A stretch of 64,000 bases of DNA from Guillardia theta CCMP2712 (lineage: Eukaryota; Protista; Cryptophyta), in the NCBI RefSeq assembly GCF_000315625.1, contig NW_005434662.1, positions 402,307 through 466,306 on the forward strand. The letters run 5' to 3'. Below, piece by piece: positions 48,646 to 57,348 of the stretch. The position numbers and the translations under genes are program-made. Every line of letters begins with the position of its first letter. Positions within the stretch are counted from its first letter, which is position 1. The notes under the pieces were generated by a model. The model was not told the DNA's origin, made no database searches, and saw only the letters and a program-made list of their open reading frames with translations.

Positions 48646-50862
48646 ATGTTCCGTAATACTTGGGCAACGAAGGTAGATTGATCATATGCGAATTACTGGT
48701 GTGACCTTTGCTCGATCAACAGGCAACCCTGCTGGTTGCCCTTTCCTTGTTATGTTTCATCCTTCCAACCTCCGAGGCTGCGAAGAAGAAGAAGGGGAAA
48801 GGTTGCGAATGTCCTGGCATTCCGCGACGCTCTGAACTCCCGTACGCACAGGCAACAAGAACGCAAAGGGAGCTAAGAAAGCTGGTTCCGATCCTCTCAA
48901 GTGTGGTGTTTGCATCGCAGCTGTTGCAGAGATCCAGAAAGAACTTCAGACTACAGAGAACTCCACCAGCACGCTGGACCTCCGCTGGGGTTTGACAGCA
49001 GAAGTCACTGAAGGAAGGGCAAAGCGCATCGGCAAGGTGGACTAGAGACTTCTTGTAGCAGGCTGTGAATGTTGTTGGTTGCAGGTGATCCCTTACAAGC
49101 GCTCTGAGCTCCGATCCATTGAGGTAGGAGGAGCGCCTTCGAGGCTGCCGAAGGCTGACCCATTGTTGCCGTTACCAGGTCATGGAGAAAGTATGTGAAA
49201 CGATGAAGTCGTACGCGAAATACGAGCGCGTGAAGGGAGAAATACAGCTGATGAAGACCACCAACGTGACGGCCCTCGAGGTAGGATCAGCGATCAATGT
49301 TGCCGGCGCTTCTGAGGCCATGCCAGGCGGAGTATCCCGAGGCTCAACGCATTAAAAGGGACTCGGAGGAATCGCAGAAAGATCGTAGCAAGGTATGGCG
49401 AGGCCTTGGTGGAGGATAACGGGATTGATGGTGATGCAGTTCGAACGATTCTGTGAAGAGCTGGTTGAGAAGAGTGAGGAGAGCATCGTTCAATCTGTGA
49501 GGAATGGCGACAACAACTCCGCCATGGTGGACGCTGTCTGCTACGGAGAGGTAACTTCCTTTCATAGCCCCAGATGACCTCGCTGAATGTTCTGACAGGA
49601 GGCCGTGTGCGGCAAGGAGAGGGCTAAATGCCAGCCAGGCTCCTACAGTAGCTACATGGGACTTGCTCCATGCAGCCTCTGCGAGCAGGGCACGTACCAG
49701 ACGGAGGAGGGGCAGACAGGCTGCGTTGAATGTGCCGCTGGCTTCAACACCTCACTTCGAGGATCCGCATCGGACGGTGAGCTCCGTTTCTCCTCCCCCA
49801 TGCTCCCTGTTTCCTCACCTATTCCTGTCGTCCCCTCTGCTCTCTTCCTCCCCATGCTCCAGTTCGCTTCTCCTGACGTAGGAAGCAGCAAATTGCACTG
49901 CTATCTGCAAGCCTGGAAGCTTCAGCGACAACGGACTAGAGCCTTGCTCTCCCTGCGGCGTTGGCGCGTATCAGCCTGAGGCAGGAAGCAAACAGTGCCA
50001 CGCGTGCCCGGATGGAAAGAACACAGAGGCGACCGGCGCCATGTATGTGACTGAGTGCGTGTCCAAGTGCGGAGATGGCAGGAAGTCTACGGAGGAGGAG
50101 TGCGACGACGGCAACGTGTACCCTGGTGATGGATGCGACCACCAGTGCAAGGTAGAAGCTGGCTCAGCCTGCTCCTTCTTGAGCTCCGTCGGATCCAAGA
50201 GCGAGTGCAACAAGGTGGTCTGCGGAGATGGGAAGCGACAGAACTCCACGGACGGGACGGTGATCGAGATCTGCGATGACGGCAACGTTGCCAACGGGGA
50301 CGGATGCTCCTCGACCTGCGGAGTGGAACCTGGCTTCTCCTGTGATCTCAACAAGGACAAGACGGAGTGCCACGAGGTCAAGTGCGGAGACGGTGTGCAG
50401 GAGATCTCTTCGGATGGCTCGCGAGACGAGAAGTGCGACGATGGCAACGAGAAGGACGGCGACGGCTGCGACAGCTCCTGCAAGCTTGAGGAGGGCTTCA
50501 TCTGCAGCGGACGCTACGGTCAGAGAACTCTTTGCTACCCCGTTACCTGCGGCGATGGGCTCAGGGAGACCTCGGGAAGCAAGCAGGAGGCTTGCGATGA
50601 CGGAAACACGGAGGACGGAGACGGTTGCTCGAGCACCTGCAGCATTGAGTCCGGCTTCCAATGTGAGCCGATGTCGGGAAGCAGGAGGGGAAGGAGCAAC
50701 GCAATGGGTGTAGAAGGCTTCTTGACGCAAGGGATGGACAACTGTACTCGCATCCCTGGCTCGAGCAACGAGACCGGAGGGGAAGAGAAGAAGGAGGGAG
50801 GGTTCTTCTCCAACCTCTTCGGGGGCAGCAAAGCAACGGAGCCGCAGGCGTCGGAGCTGTAA
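48646..50862 (+). CDS. Secretory protein: Canopy/saposin-like (DUF3456) + GCC2_GCC3-type Cys-rich repeats + four DUF4215 (Myxococcus Cys-rich) repeats, C-terminal ASEL
   Basis: Signal ATLLVALSLLCFILPTSEA; KCGVCIAAVAEI..YKRSELRSIEVMEKVC..FCEELVEKSEE..VC (Canopy); CQPGSYS..APCSLCEQGTYQTEEGQTGCVEC and a second copy (GCC2_GCC3); 4x CGDG..E.CDDGN...GDGC...C..E.G..C. Confidence 0.82.
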
Positions 50863-51074
50863 GAGGCCATGGAAGATGCAAGGATCTTTATCATGTCATA
50901 CAACAATAATAAATCAAAGCTTTATCTGTCAAGCTAGCGATCAACAAAGGACCTTCTCCCTACACCTTCCCCACCTCTGTCTTCTCCCCTGCCTTGCAAT
51001 ATCTATATCTTTTTCTTTTCTCTCCCTGTTCCTCGGCCTCTCCTTCCTCGTCCTCTCTCCTCTCGGTCTTCGTT

Positions 51075-54000
51075 CTACCTGCCTCCCCGTATCTTCTGAA
51101 TCGCCTGAATGTGCTTGACCATCTTCCCCTTTCCCGTGGGCTTGGCCAGGCATGAGTTTCGGTGCGCTTTTAGCTCTATCCTCGGGAGTTTCTTGTAGCA
51201 CCAGTCGCACTCCGCGTACACGCCGAACGAGCAGGACATCTTGTGCTCCTCAATGTGCTGGACGTCAAACCAAAGGTCGCATCCTTCGAACGGACAAGAT
51301 CGACAAGCGCGGAAAGGACACGTCAGCTGGTGCTGCTCGACGTCGCTGGCAGGCAACCACTTGCGGCAACCATCGTGTTGGCACTGGGAGCTCTTGCGGA
51401 TCAGCTCGAGGGGTGCGACGTCTCGTTTCTCGTGATGCGCCTTGATATCCTGCAGCTCCACGTACTCGTCCCACGTCATCCCCTCCCAGTCCGAGCCGAT
51501 GGCGGAGGCAGGACGAGAGTCAGACGAGTAGGTGCTGATGACGTCAGCATCCCGCTGCCTGTGCGCAAAACTTCGAGCTACCTCGTGCTGCACGCGGCCG
51601 TGAGGGTTCGCGTGTCCCTCGTTGTACATGATCGGCGATCTCCCCACATGCCCCGCCAGCTCGTACCCGCTGACCAAGGCGCCCTCCACGCTGGTTTCAA
51701 CGAACCAGTCGCCTGCGATGCCGATGCCTGTAGCAGGGTCGAAGGCGCAGAAGGGGCCGAAGGAGGGGTCGGAGTGCTCTGAGATCCAGTAGGCGCTCGC
51801 GGGCTGGTCGATGTTTCCCTCCTCCCACAGTATTGCCTGCGACATGAGGACGTGTATCTGCGAGTTGACCATCCCCAACGCGTGCAGGAACTTCTTGATC
51901 GCTAGCTGACAGACGACCGGGGCGAGCTCGCCTCTGTTCTCCTCCGACCAAGTCGCGGTGAGGTGAAGCGTCCAGGTGTCCACTGGCGTTCCCTGCGGCC
52001 CCACGCTGGGAGCGTTTCTGTGATGCTCAGTGCGAGGGCTTCCTCCCCAGATGGGCCCCTGAACGGCCTCAGGTTTCTCAGCTCGCAGCCAATCGGTCAC
52101 AGAATTCATGGGGTCGTAGGAGGTGAACTTGGATGACTCGCGGTAGGCGCTCTGGAGGGGCGGGAAGGCACCTTCCTCAACGAAGTAGGCGTCGTAGGGC
52201 GAGTAGACCGGATGGCTGAAGGTGACGAGCACAACCCAGACGGGCTTGAACTTGATCAAGCGCGGGATGCTCGCCAACTTAGGCTGACAATCGGAAAGAA
52301 GCTGATCAGCATCCTTGGGAGGAACGCAGAACAGAACGAAATCGAACAAGCCTTGCGACCTGACCTGCTGCTCAATGTTCTCCGTCAAGACCTCGTACTT
52401 TCCAGTCCCAGCCATGGGCAGTACTGCCTGCACCCTCAAGCCAAGCCTTGTGTCCACCTTAGCAAGAAACTTTCTTGCGATCGCGGACATGTCAGGCTTT
52501 GATATCAACCAGGGTGAAGCCCCATGTCCTCGGCCGCTGCTGTGACAGTGACTTTTTCGATGCGGAAGATGAGGAAGCGGCAGGTCAGAGGCTTGCAGAT
52601 GAGAGTGAGGGTCTAAAGTGACGCTGCGCATGTTGGAGGAGGATTGCTTGCTGGCGTTGCTGTCTGTAGTCAAGTGCCGGTGAATCAAGATCGACTCGAT
52701 GTTCCTCTCTCCTTCGATCAAATTGAGCGTGGCTGCGAAGCCCATGCTGTTGCCATCTGTCTCCGACGCCTTGCTCAATATCCCTACCCGGGGGTTCCAC
52801 TCTGCGATGATCGCCTCCTCTGCTAGTCCGGCGAACATCTGCCTCATGTACGGGCCGTTGAAGCAAAAGTAAGGAGCGCCGGACGAGTAGGTGATGCCGT
52901 TCCTCTCCAACGCTCCCAGACGCCCCCCGGCCCTCAGGTCCGAGTCGAACACAACGACTTCGATCCGATACTGCTCACGGATGGTCTTAGCACAGATCGC
53001 CCCAGCCATGCCTGCCCCGATGACGGCGCATCTGGGAGAGTAGTCCTCGCGGTCGGGAATGGGCTCAGCGGGCTCGTGGACAACCTTGCAGATCTCGTCG
53101 GCAACGACGTCACTGACGGGAGCGACGGGTCCCTTCCCTCCCATCAACGACCAGAACTCCTCAGACTCCTGATGTTGCTCCAGGATCGTCAGCTTGCACT
53201 TGACCACGTTCGTCTCCATCCTGTCCACGTACAACTTTTTGATGTACGTCTTGCACGCGTTCCACTCATGCTTGTAAGCGTCCTCGCCCTTCCAGAGGAA
53301 GAGAGTGTTCCAGCTGTCGAGTAGAAAGATGTCTCCAGCGTTCAAGGACTTGTGAGACACGGGAAGAGGGAAAGATCGGATGCTCAACTTGTTTCCTTTG
53401 AGCCGATACAACTTCGCATCTACTCCCCTCTTCGATGACATCAGGTTCTGAGAGGAGGTTGATTCACTCGGGACGCTTTTCCTCCTCAAAGATCTGATAA
53501 TCTTCGTGAAATCTTCTTTCGACATCATTCGGTCCTTCGGCACTTTTGACATGGCCTTATCCATATCGTCAATATTCTGCACAATCCCCAGGAAGCCAAG
53601 AGCAGCTTCGAGTTGATGTGAAGTGAAGGGGTTAGATTCCAGCTCAAGATCGTCATACACCTGAGAGACCATCACCTCTACCTCCTCCTCCATCATCTCA
53701 GCTCTGTAAAGGATCGTCTCGTACGTGAAGTCTTGCTCCGGCAAAATCACACAGATAGCGGAGATGAACCAGGCGCTCCTGGAGTGATTCTCGGCTTCGA
53801 TCATCTCACAGAATTGGTTGAAACTCATTTCACCCGAGGCATCAACGTAGCGGTTGATGAGTTCGAAAACTTCCTCCATCTCTAGCGATAGACCCAGCTG
53901 CTTCAGCGCGTGCCCGATGTCCGCTGCGTCTATCGTGCCGTTGCCCTGGCTGTCGTACTGCTTGAACACGCGCTGATATTGTGAGGCAGCGTTCTTGCTC

Positions 54001-54488
54001 ATCATTTGGACGAAAGGGCCGCCCCAGCTGCTCTTCTGCAGGCGGATGGAGATCCTTCCTCCCATGAAGTGCTTGGTGATGTTGGATGCGTTGGTGGGCA
54101 GCTCAATCTTCTGACCCTCGAGGATCAGCCAAGGCATGTTGTCGCTGTCCGACGACTCCAGCTTCACCCTAACCTCCCACTCCTCTTCCCTCGATTGCTT
54201 AGGGATGATAGGGTAAGGGCTGCTGTGCCAAGAGTTTGGGTCTGACTCATCGAGGTTGTTTCTGGTCAGTAGCGGCGATCCCTTCGTTGACATATAACTA
54301 ACCTTCGCAAACTTGCTGTAATCGATTCGATTCACTGGCAGGGATGCCACCCACGAGTTAAGCCCATTGTAGATGTTGTCTGAATCAAACGGAGCAGGTC
54401 TGTGCCTGTGCGCGCGAGCAGGAGCTTTGATAAAGAAGCTGTTGTCAAGCTGAAACAATATCAAGTAGTCCTTGTTCATGTTGTTCAT
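51075..54488 (-). CDS. EF-hand + gelsolin repeat + renalase-like NAD(P)/FAD oxidoreductase + C-terminal Cys/His (TRAF-like) zinc-finger fusion
   Basis: 1137-aa open frame: VFKQYDSQGNGTIDAAD and DASGEMSFNQF (EF pair); KLYRLKG..SLNAGDIFLLD..LFLWKG..ESEEFWSLMGG (gelsolin); CAVIGAGMAG..VVVFD..AGGR..GAPYF..AGDWF...VEGALVSG (renalase/COG3380-like); CQHDGC..HQLTC, CPFEGC..HKMSC, CDWC..HRNSC. A short upstream exon is likely (acceptor TAG near 54510). Confidence 0.85.
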   Translation of the reverse strand: MNNMNKDYLILFQLDNSFFIKAPARAHRHRPAPFDSDNIYNGLNSWVASLPVNRIDYSKFAKVSYMSTKGSPLLTRNNLDESDPNSWHSSPYPIIPKQSREEEWEVRVKLESSDSDNMPWLILEGQKIELPTNASNITKHFMGGRISIRLQKSSWGGPFVQMMSKNAASQYQRVFKQYDSQGNGTIDAADIGHALKQLGLSLEMEEVFELINRYVDASGEMSFNQFCEMIEAENHSRSAWFISAICVILPEQDFTYETILYRAEMMEEEVEVMVSQVYDDLELESNPFTSHQLEAALGFLGIVQNIDDMDKAMSKVPKDRMMSKEDFTKIIRSLRRKSVPSESTSSQNLMSSKRGVDAKLYRLKGNKLSIRSFPLPVSHKSLNAGDIFLLDSWNTLFLWKGEDAYKHEWNACKTYIKKLYVDRMETNVVKCKLTILEQHQESEEFWSLMGGKGPVAPVSDVVADEICKVVHEPAEPIPDREDYSPRCAVIGAGMAGAICAKTIREQYRIEVVVFDSDLRAGGRLGALERNGITYSSGAPYFCFNGPYMRQMFAGLAEEAIIAEWNPRVGILSKASETDGNSMGFAATLNLIEGERNIESILIHRHLTTDSNASKQSSSNMRSVTLDPHSHLQASDLPLPHLPHRKSHCHSSGRGHGASPWLISKPDMSAIARKFLAKVDTRLGLRVQAVLPMAGTGKYEVLTENIEQQVRSQGLFDFVLFCVPPKDADQLLSDCQPKLASIPRLIKFKPVWVVLVTFSHPVYSPYDAYFVEEGAFPPLQSAYRESSKFTSYDPMNSVTDWLRAEKPEAVQGPIWGGSPRTEHHRNAPSVGPQGTPVDTWTLHLTATWSEENRGELAPVVCQLAIKKFLHALGMVNSQIHVLMSQAILWEEGNIDQPASAYWISEHSDPSFGPFCAFDPATGIGIAGDWFVETSVEGALVSGYELAGHVGRSPIMYNEGHANPHGRVQHEVARSFAHRQRDADVISTYSSDSRPASAIGSDWEGMTWDEYVELQDIKAHHEKRDVAPLELIRKSSQCQHDGCRKWLPASDVEQHQLTCPFRACRSCPFEGCDLWFDVQHIEEHKMSCSFGVYAECDWCYKKLPRIELKAHRNSCLAKPTGKGKMVKHIQAIQKIRGGR

Positions 54489-54986
54489 CGAGAAACTATC
54501 CCTCTCAGGCTACTAATACATCAAGATCGATCTCTTCCTCTCCTCTTCCGGCTGCCCTTGCTCGTGCCATCTTCGCCCTCGTGCCATCTTCGCTCTCGTG
54601 CCATCTTCGCTCCCTCCTTGCCCTCCTCAGACTCCTCAGGTTCCTTGTGCCTACTGGTTGCGCGCATTTTTTTCGCCAGGCCCAATGAATCAGTAACCAA
54701 GTCCGCCTCGTGTATTGAGTAAAGATATCCATAGGGCAGCAAATAGTTGAGGTCATTTGCTTAATGAATTGCTCAGGACAAAACCGCGGAGTAGGTTCGC
54801 CAGAAATAGGAGGATGCACAACCCATGCATAGAGGAAACGCAAGTGGAGGGAGGAAGGGAGGAGGATAAAGGAACAGGATCAGAAGCAGACGCAGAAGAG
54901 ACATACCAGAGAAAGCAGAAAATTTTCGATGATGATGCAATACTCACTTTGATCTTTCAGGCGTGATGAACTGATAGAGACGAACC

Positions 54987-57348
54987 ATGGACGAACCCAT
55001 GAGTGCTGATCGCCGAGCCTCCTGTCAGAGGACGACTCTGCTCAGATCTTCATTCGCCACGGCTGGAGGGCTTGTGCTGCTGCTCTGCTGGTATGTGAGA
55101 CTGCTGCTGTCATGGTTGAAAGTGAGGGTGCTGCTTCCAACAGCGTCGGGTGGATGTTGAGCAAAGAAGGTGGCGATCAAGCCTCCTCGTTGGTTCAGCG
55201 AGGAGATATTGGTAAGGCATCTCGTCCCCATGGACAGCTTGCCGATGTATTGTATGACAGATAAGTCGTGGAAAGCGTTCAAGCACCAGTCGCAAACGGA
55301 GACCTCGTTTGTGGAGGGAGAAGATGAAGTGATGAAGAGAGTCTTAAACCACAAGAACGGCAAGTTGAAGGTCAGAAACCTCCCAAGACGATGAGCGAGG
55401 ACCATGTGAATTGCTGACGAGGATGTTCAGAAATATCAGCTGATGCATCCTGAAATGATAGAAGAGCTAGAAAACGCTATTCAAGATCAGGTTGATTTCA
55501 TCTTCTCATTTGAAGATACATATACGTGATTTCTGAGGTGTAGATTGCCGAGGAAGTGAAAAAGAAATTACATCTGGCTCTTGAGCAAAAAAAGGTTGAC
55601 TCAATTTCGAACGAAAGCAAAACTCTTGATGCAAACGATTAGAATCAGGCTTTCATCAACTTGAACAGAACCATCAAAGAGGTATCTAATGAAAACCTAG
55701 TTAGAGACGTTGCAGTGAGTTTGATCCATTGTCGGAAACAGATGAAAACATCTATCGCACATCTGAAAGGGTTACATGTTGGAGCAAATGTCTCAAGCAT
55801 TACATCGAATCTAGAAGACAGCATCTGTAACTTCATGAATTGCTCGGGCTGGCCAGCTGAAATGAAAGAGGTCATGTAAATCAGGCCCTGATCATTGATG
55901 AGCCTGACTTGAGCTCAGCTCAACAAGGAAAAGAGCGAAATACAAGCGAGGCTGAGCAAATACGTGGCAGAAGTAGATGAAGACAAGAAGGAATTTCACG
56001 ATATGAAGAGCAAGTTCTTCGACAAGTACTTGTCAATGGACATCAAGTCACAACAGAAGCAAGACGAGGTAGTGGGAAAGAGCAGCATGCTTCAAGCGTT
56101 TCATTCTTATATGTTGCAGCTCAAGTACTGGAGACAAGTCGTTGCTGCCTATGAGCATCGCTTAAACCAACCGCGTACAGGTCGACTAATCCGTTCAGAA
56201 GTAAGTGCCTTGACTGGTTACAGCAGCGGAAAACTCGTCAGCCTGCGATGAAGTTGAAACCATCAGCAAAGACTCTGGAAGGTGCTAAGAAACTCGTGTA
56301 GCTTCGATGGAAACTTATCTGCACTATCCAAACTTTCAGGTTGACGGTGAATGCTGGGGCAGGAGTGAAATGCTTCTGGCTGATCAAGTCGAACAAAAAG
56401 GTGATGTAAGAATGTTGTGGAACTTTCACTAAGTTGGAAAGAATGTTTCACTAAGTTGGAAAGAATGTTTCACTAAGTTGGAAAGAATGTTTCACTAAGT
56501 TGGAAAGAATGTTTCACTAAGTTGGAATCTCAGACCCTCAACGTTCAATTCTCTAACGTCAAGAACTATGGGAACTCGAGCATTGCGGTGTTTGTCGTTA
56601 ACACCTCGTCGGCTCCTCTAACGGACATCATCGACAACGTGAGCAAGGCGACTGCGCTGTTGCTCTTTCGCTGACTTCATATCAGATTTATCTTGACGCC
56701 CCGGCGACCACCTTGAGGGGGTATGTTCCTGAGTTATCGATGCAGAGAAACACCAGCGAGGTGAGCGATGCCATCGAACGTGCGCCGGTGACGATTTGTG
56801 TGAAGATTTTGATCCACAACGACTTGGACAAGGAGTTGTTGCATCCTTCGACTTTCAAAGTATCATGGACCAGCTCGTGAGCTACAATCGCACACTTACA
56901 AACACAACACAATCAGAATTGAGCTATATGTAATACACAAACATGTACATGTTCCGAACTTTCGAAATGGTCAATTTGAGGGCAAGAACAACTTGGCAAG
57001 AAATAGACGTAAAAAATAGAAGATACCAGGGACAAGGCAAGCTCTCCAAAACACAGAAGAGTCCAGTATCATGTCTGCTTCCTGTCGTACGGATGGTACC
57101 GATCGATCGATTCAGATGGTTGGTGCTTGACATGCGGCCGGAAATTCTGGACAGCATGATGTGATCCCTGTCGCTGATATGAGCTCATCTCTACAACGTA
57201 TTCGGGTACCTCCCCCACTCGCTCCGTCGACCTCCAGCCTGCGCTGAATCGCATCGCGTCTCCTGCTAGCCATGATTCATTCCCGCAGTCTACCAAGACA
57301 AGGGTCCACCATCATGAGGAGGAGGCAGAGGCTGAACGCAGCAAGTGA
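54987..57348 (+). CDS. Multi-exon uncharacterised protein with coiled-coil region
   Basis: Series of short exons with canonical splice sites (VAIKPPRWFSEEIL.., LNKEKSEIQARLSKYVAEVDEDKKEF..); no family recognised. Confidence 0.5.
56424..56527. repeat. 22-bp perfect tandem repeat x4.7, apparently intronic
   Basis: (TTTCACTAAGTTGGAAAGAATG)4 + TTTCACTAAGTTGGAA, no spacers. Confidence 0.95.

Follow-up and report, generated by a model that had tools for sequence, protein, structure and literature searches.

Oxidation of 2- and 6-dihydro-NAD(P) by renalases yields NAD(P)+ and H2O2 (PMC12565349). What the enzymes of this family do physiologically is still debated. The gene described here lies on the minus strand, at positions 51075-54488, of a 64,000-nucleotide stretch of the genome of the cryptophyte Guillardia theta CCMP2712 (the window; C12:402307-466306). 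It encodes a flavoprotein that carries, in order, a disordered N-terminus, a four-EF-hand domain, a G2-type gelsolin repeat, a flavin adenine dinucleotide (FAD) domain, a linker, and three TRAF-type fingers. This is a real, conserved, and apparently undescribed architecture within the renalase family, for which a MICAL-like mechanism is speculative. The original prediction, drawn from the letters of the stretch, knew of no description of such an architecture, and the literature searched likewise yielded none of a renalase fused to gelsolin, EF-hand, or TRAF-type fingers. The features of the gene, with positions in the window and residues of the encoded protein, are as follows:

51075..54488, (-) strand: complete intronless coding sequence of 1137 codons plus stop (open reading frame (ORF) list, genome search, Hanusia alignment)
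51002..54683, (-) strand: unspliced mRNA, approximate extent (ends of RNA-assembly contigs, imprecise)
54135..54488, (-) strand: N-terminal residues 1-118, predicted to be disordered, with short motifs kept in Hanusia and the environmental homologues
53460..54131, (-) strand: residues 120-343, a predicted short beta element (120-154 and 238-247) flanking a calmodulin-like four-EF-hand domain (157-343) (model, fold matches)
53799..53975, (-) strand: EF-hand pair 1, residues 172-230 (Pfam EF-hand_7, 38.3 bits, cut-off 30)
53124..53426, (-) strand: single G2-type gelsolin repeat, fold domain residues 355-455 (Pfam, model, fold matches)
51639..53036, (-) strand: renalase-family (amine-oxidase fold) FAD domain, residues 485-950 (Pfam, sequence matches to solved structures)
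52542..52757, (-) strand: largest clade-specific insertion, residues 578-649 (alignment with stand-alone homologues)
51150..51383, (-) strand: three TRAF-type CCHC zinc fingers, residues 1036-1113 (ligand pattern, profile alignments)

In Guillardia theta, this is one expressed intronless gene with one message. RNA contigs from three studies cover the ORF without any joint, including the X1 contig of 5557 nt that spans 50500-54683 and the X2 contig that spans 51002-53125, both free of internal joints. The upstream neighbour at 54959-55681 contains five GT..AG introns of 48-60 nt that are spliced in the same RNA runs, and the intergenic stretch 54684-54958 is devoid of RNA-contig coverage, so that these runs represent RNA and not DNA. 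The original prediction had noted a single uninterrupted 1137-codon frame in intron-dense surroundings and had proposed RNA data as a check for a single mRNA; the frame was recovered at 51075..54488 (-), the five introns of the neighbour contrast with none in the flavoprotein ORF, and unspliced contigs lie over it. Raw reads of run X17, sampled at ~6% of the run, gave 0 on the gene; the reads of this run fall almost exclusively near the 3' end of the neighbouring gene and are uninformative on expression of the flavoprotein gene. Upstream of the ATG, the frame is open for 7 codons only. Both M1 and M4 are candidate starts, the Hanusia orthologue beginning at the equivalent of M4, and the protein has ~1135 residues and is probably cytosolic. 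A search of the genome (87.1 Mb, 669 contigs) found the ORF to be single-copy, with only weak EF-hand and gelsolin-repeat matches elsewhere.

The same domain order is shared by Guillardia theta, Hanusia phi, and at least three environmental eukaryotes. The Hanusia phi protein (EukProt), the sole relative besides the window's own protein in a word search among proteins of similar length, has 1132 amino acids, 78% identity, and a collinear match from MNKDY to the C-terminal RGGR; the EukProt data for this species presumably derive from a transcriptome. An exhaustive search of representative proteins returned 23 below 1e-30, the best of which were mostly exon-sized metagenome pieces. Collinear multi-exon homologues were found on the environmental contigs L020/L021 (GC 54-56%), matching residues 10-1102, L019 (GC 65%), matching residues 117-1122, and L008, matching residues 418-1117. 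As to the taxon of these environmental eukaryotes, a V-ATPase subunit d comparison with Guillardia gave 74-76% identity over short exons, which was not decisive. In L020, a single exon corresponds to residues 74-452 (N-terminal part, EF-hands, and gelsolin repeat); in L008, a single exon corresponds to residues 418-1117 (end of the gelsolin repeat, FAD domain, and fingers), and another metagenome piece (P0051) is continuous from the gelsolin repeat into the GxGxxG motif. These data bear on the possibility that neighbouring genes or retained introns were misread as a single ORF. The length of the ORF, unusual for the Guillardia genome, is the only point that speaks for such a gene-model artefact, and its probability is next to nil: the ORF lies under one continuous RNA contig, the Hanusia protein matches it from end to end, the domain junctions lie within single environmental exons, and the insertions are conserved at the protein level across five lineages. 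Because of the RNA contigs, the Hanusia match, and the junction-bridging exons, a fusion artefact is excluded for practical purposes.

Several observations concern the genomic surroundings. The upstream neighbour (54959-55681) is highly expressed, with a contig depth of 730 in X1. The product of the convergent neighbour gene at 50041-50862 (+) is rich in Cys and contains four DUF4215 repeats (PF13948, E 3e-21). This gene is well expressed; its poly(A) site lies near 50932, with only ~70 nt separating it from where the flavoprotein mRNA appears to end, and one RNA contig crosses both genes. On the GC-rich environmental contig, the homologue adjoins a gene for a Kringle-domain protein (L019:13111-14409 (-)), a domain unusual outside animals.

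The FAD domain is assigned by its sequence to the renalase/amine-oxidase family. From residue 489, it matches the Pfam families NAD_binding_8 (38.5 bits, cut-off 21.9) and Amino_oxidase (26.1 bits, cut-off 19.8), and among solved structures its matches to two renalases of bacteria, 3kkj (E 5.2e-15) and 4zcc (E 5e-14), run collinearly in three stretches over chain residues 5-321/336. Other amine-oxidase families match the first ~80 residues of the domain only, and human renalase was not detected by a sequence search against solved structures. Hundreds of stand-alone homologues of 320-380 amino acids were found, some labelled 'renalase' by their sources. The complete renalase/COG3380-like domain proposed from the letters was recovered with all the quoted motifs located: GAGMAG (491-496), GGR (521-523), GAPYF (537-541), GDW (926-928), VEGA (934-937), and SG (940-941). 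When 77 stand-alone homologues were aligned, 77 columns were conserved at 75% or more, and the Guillardia protein kept 48 of these, including every flavin-binding motif (G491, G493, G496, and G521-G522-R523). Relative to the stand-alone homologues, the domain contains four clade-specific insertions (residues 578-649, 788-805, 811-834, and 898-910). A conserved motif that begins in the first of these includes D635, L636, P639, H643, R644, and H647 and continues past the insertion to G654, H655, G656, and W660; among its residues, H643, R644, and H647, together with H655 just beyond the insertion, are some of those invariant in five lineages.

One alternative reading of these data is that of an ordinary renalase on a scaffold, which would convert 2- and 6-dihydro-NAD(P) to NAD(P)+ and H2O2 in nicotinamide-cofactor repair and merely be concentrated at a cellular site by the extra domains. 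This would agree with bacterial renalases being the nearest solved relatives, with the name carried by stand-alone homologues, and with the retention of the FAD-binding motifs and many family-conserved residues; in addition, no second renalase-like domain and no stand-alone paralogue was found in the Guillardia genome with the query used, and the protein could be the cell's sole copy. However, seven residues conserved in 78-99% of the stand-alone homologues are replaced, the three full-length members of the clade agreeing at most of these positions, the insertions contain invariant His/Arg residues, and human renalase went undetected by sequence, and this alternative is regarded as unlikely. 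The loss of near-invariant renalase residues and the gain of conserved His/Arg-rich insertions make it probable that the substrate is something other than just the 2- or 6-dihydro-NAD(P) of canonical renalases.

Other renalase fusions were observed in the protein library. A common one joins an N-terminal DNA-photolyase/cryptochrome domain to a renalase-like FAD domain in proteins of ~830 amino acids (for example P0046, P0071, and P0145, with ~15 more of 790-900 amino acids), and the literature search found no paper on this photolyase-renalase fusion. One protein (P0039) combines an N-terminal 4Fe-4S (Fer4_20) domain with a renalase-like domain.

On the N-terminal side of the FAD domain, the gelsolin repeat classifies as G2-type by sequence. 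The original prediction had placed a gelsolin-homology repeat at ~53420-53130, and Pfam and fold comparison locate it at ~53426-53124. The Pfam profile Gelsolin (PF00626) matches residues 374-446 with 38.2 bits (cut-off 21, E 1.3e-9), and its cut-off is also passed by Hanusia and the environmental homologues. An AlphaFold2 model of residues 1-470, built on a 24-row alignment, reached a mean pLDDT of 69.5, with values above 90 for residues 355-455, 67-97 for residues 120-250, and 70-89 for residues 260-340, residues 1-118 being disordered. With this model, Foldseek retrieved the second domains of gelsolin (G2) and severin (D2) at TM values, by target, of 0.72-0.78, and fold comparison by VIA with gelsolin-family repeats gave Z scores of 13-14 and rmsd values of 1.6-3.4 over 86-100 residues. 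The nearest repeats by alignment are gelsolin G2, severin D2, and fragmin F2 (25-31% identity). Retained in the repeat are the N-terminal basic strand KLYRLKGNK of G2-type domains and the residues G385, D386, and E408 (GD...E), which align with the calcium-site residues of gelsolin G2; also retained is the linker found after G2 in members of the gelsolin family. Conventional gelsolin-family genes are present in the Guillardia genome as well, and the literature searched held nothing relevant on gelsolin in Guillardia.

A complex of residues 350-462 with actin was predicted using a cryptophyte-type actin, the protein of an intronless metagenomic gene (L023:601-1722). Where the two overlap, this protein shows no apparent difference from the Guillardia actin gene model (P0172), which is without an internal exon. 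The complex scored 0.37 (runs 0.02, 0.37, and 0.56) against 0.00 for the best control, with contact agreement of at least 0% and partner pLDDT of at least 78, and thus supports the pairing weakly. Among 78 solved complexes, 51 came up to the mark set for such scores, as did 2 of 108 mismatched pairs; at scores of 0.60 or below, only 5 of the 78 solved complexes did so, but all 4 passing mismatches. Because gelsolin-actin complexes have already been solved, the pass may be a memory effect, and it was counted as a small increment. As for actin itself, one actin of the Guillardia genome bears the name GUITHDRAFT_166560. At G000:C194:704-1820 (-) (loci L009/L010), all three exon pieces of an actin gene are in the genome; the public model (P0172) of 339 amino acids skips the short middle exon (profile positions 121-176) and reads 'RPWIRSS' there.

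Preceding the gelsolin repeat, residues 157-343 are modelled as a calmodulin-like domain with four EF-hands, confirmed by Pfam and by fold. An EF-hand pair had been proposed at ~53980-53790, where Pfam places EF-hand_7 (~53975-53799), and a calmodulin sequence matches the EF region with E ~5e-13. Residues 155-238 match troponin C (Z 14.0, rmsd 2.6, 84 residues), and over residues 157-343 a total of 147-150 residues align with whole calmodulin or troponin C (calmodulin over 159-343), which, together with the model, gives substance to the possible second degenerate EF pair as a second calmodulin-like lobe. Residues 1-165, 235-350, and the large insertion (560-665) matched no Pfam family. Feature searches of the ESM Atlas with the N-terminus and the whole protein gave no matches, and a shape search of the same resource returned the gelsolin and calmodulin families only.

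At the C-terminus, the three Cys/His fingers of the original prediction were sought with the tandem pattern C-x(2-6)-C-x11-12-H-x3-7-C/H and found at residues 1036-1057, 1065-1086, and 1094-1113 as C-x(2,4)-C-x11-H-x3-C; their Cys/His positions are retained wherever homologues cover them. Profile comparison suggests that they are TRAF-type: the family profile of the C-terminal region aligned all three with ZF1-3 of TRAF6 (3hcs, E 4.6e-4), and Pfam zf-TRAF matched 4 of 8 family members (best 1.6e-6). The Guillardia fingers alone fall below the Pfam cut-offs for zf-TRAF and Sina_ZnF (13.6-20.2 against 32 for the latter). The fingers are preceded by a linker from the FAD domain (residues 950-1035, ~51384-51638), in which the motifs GRSPIM.N.G.ANP.G.VQ.E and YSSDSR are kept in all lineages; these motifs matched no known family.

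The alignment of all three fingers with TRAF6 also favours another interpretation, in which the flavoprotein would work in signalling or trafficking and have no actin role. The gelsolin-fold domain would then act in protein-protein contacts or in calcium or lipid binding, as in Sec23/24, and the fingers and calmodulin-like domain would tie the redox activity to a signalling complex of a ubiquitin- or TRAF-like kind. The presence of the Sec23a gelsolin-like domain among the fold matches and the weak outcome of the actin complex prediction are in line with this interpretation, which is nevertheless judged rather unlikely, as the repeat is closer in sequence to the G2-type domains of gelsolin, severin, and fragmin than to Sec23/24 and keeps the downstream linker of the gelsolin family.

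As a whole, the architecture is best explained as an FAD-dependent oxidase that is positioned, and perhaps switched, by its non-catalytic modules, a reading that is held tentatively and at somewhat less than an even chance. G2-type repeats bind the sides of actin filaments, and the gelsolin repeat could dock the protein on the filament side in the same manner. The calmodulin-like domain and the gelsolin calcium site may make this docking, or the activity, sensitive to calcium, and the TRAF-type fingers may recruit a protein partner. On the model of renalases, a hydride from the substrate would go to the flavin and the electrons on to O2, giving H2O2.

Several findings weigh against this proposal of a positioned and perhaps switched oxidase. 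Catalysis could be altered or lost, as judged from the retention of only 48 of the 77 renalase-conserved columns, a proxy for the substrate site, and from the replacements D to S535 (99% conserved), W to S780 (97%), and R to A808 (96%), together with H to S536, Q to P539, R to W660, and H to I886. In renalases, the 'H-x-W' motif contributes a candidate active-site His; H to I886 was counted as a conserved-residue loss only. With respect to calcium, the first EF-hand (EF1) was compared with the canonical 12-residue loop pattern D-x-[DNS]-x-[DNS]-G-...-E. The Guillardia loop, from D179 to D190 (DSQGNGTIDAAD), has Q at position 3 and D at position 12, and that of Hanusia (DIEGNGTIDPSN) has E at position 3 and N at position 12; EF1 is thus atypical at both positions in these two species, and EF2-EF4 are degenerate. 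Environmental homologues have a canonical EF1 loop (e.g. DVDNSGTVDGGE). Because of the atypical EF1 and the degenerate EF2-EF4, calcium sensing by the Guillardia domain is uncertain. With respect to actin, support from the complex prediction is weak, with one of its three runs at 0.02; the fold search also returned the gelsolin-like domain of Sec23a (Z 10.7), and single gelsolin-like domains such as those of Sec23/24 are not known to bind actin. Finally, a full-length AlphaFold2 prediction on a 3-sequence alignment gave a mean pLDDT of 28, leaving the FAD domain and the inter-domain contacts with no usable model.

The MICAL-analogous redox/cytoskeleton module of the original prediction held in part. 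Its domain calls and its single gene stand; a function of this kind goes no further than plausibility, in view of the renalase fold, the absence of CH and LIM domains, the weak actin support, the atypical EF1, and the replaced renalase residues. A Pfam scan of the whole protein at E values up to 1 gave no FAD_binding_3, CH, or LIM match. On this sequence comparison, the flavoprotein is not a MICAL relative, and the comparison with MICAL is one of analogy only. A functional analogue that directly oxidises actin methionines and causes filament disassembly would be suggested by the fusion of a flavoenzyme to an actin-binding-type module and zinc fingers, and, with no need for MICAL chemistry, actin could be oxidised by H2O2 freed beside a filament. 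However, in addition to the Pfam result, sulfur oxygenation is not known for enzymes of the amine-oxidase/renalase fold, and such an analogue is scarcely probable. A related proposal is that the FAD domain has been retooled, through its conserved His/Arg-rich insertions and altered substrate-site residues, into a filament-tethered, calcium-gated oxidase that would modify actin or an actin-associated protein, either directly, by LSD1-like amine oxidation of a methylated residue, or via local H2O2. This independently evolved MICAL counterpart in cryptophytes and related protists is considered highly unlikely.

The fusion, present in several lineages, may serve as a 'Rosetta-stone' hint to where a renalase-family enzyme works, its partners being a repeat of actin-binding type, a calmodulin-like domain, and TRAF-type fingers. 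Should the protein bind filaments and act on a substrate at that site, flavin redox chemistry would have a second, independent link to the cytoskeleton, an idea that is testable in this culturable, genome-sequenced alga. If not, it would be a further example of the heavy domain shuffling in protist genomes.

Comparison with described systems places the protein near several families. Bacterial and plant-type renalases (COG3380; 3kkj of Pseudomonas syringae, 4zcc/4zcd/5krq) have a common fold family with the Guillardia domain, which is collinear over the 336-residue enzyme and shares the flavin-binding motifs GxGxxG, GGR, and GDW...E..A..SG. In contrast to them, the Guillardia domain is ~140 residues longer through its four insertions, has seven near-invariant residues replaced, and is embedded in a 1137-residue protein with calcium-, actin-, and zinc-finger-type modules. 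The second domain of gelsolin, severin, and fragmin resembles the repeat in Pfam profile, fold, GD...E residues, and KLYRLKGNK strand; however, those proteins have three or six repeats, whereas the single repeat here is joined to an enzyme and is not accompanied by a G1-type capping or severing repeat. Alpha-actinin and plastin/fimbrin likewise place a calmodulin-like EF-hand domain beside an actin-binding-type module, and the EF domains of alpha-actinin and L-plastin are among the fold matches (Z 9-10), but these proteins rely on CH domains and lack an enzymatic part. TRAF6 ZF1-ZF3 share with the Guillardia fingers three successive CCHC units of equal spacing, aligned to TRAF6 residues 73-160, whereas the RING, coiled-coil, and MATH/TRAF-C domains of TRAF6 are absent from the Guillardia protein. 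With MICAL, the likeness lies in the design idea of a flavoenzyme combined with an actin-binding-type module and zinc-binding domains. The components differ, as MICAL employs a PHBH-type monooxygenase, to which no homology was detected, a CH actin module, and a LIM zinc module, whereas the Guillardia protein combines an amine-oxidase/renalase fold with a gelsolin repeat and TRAF-type CCHC fingers.

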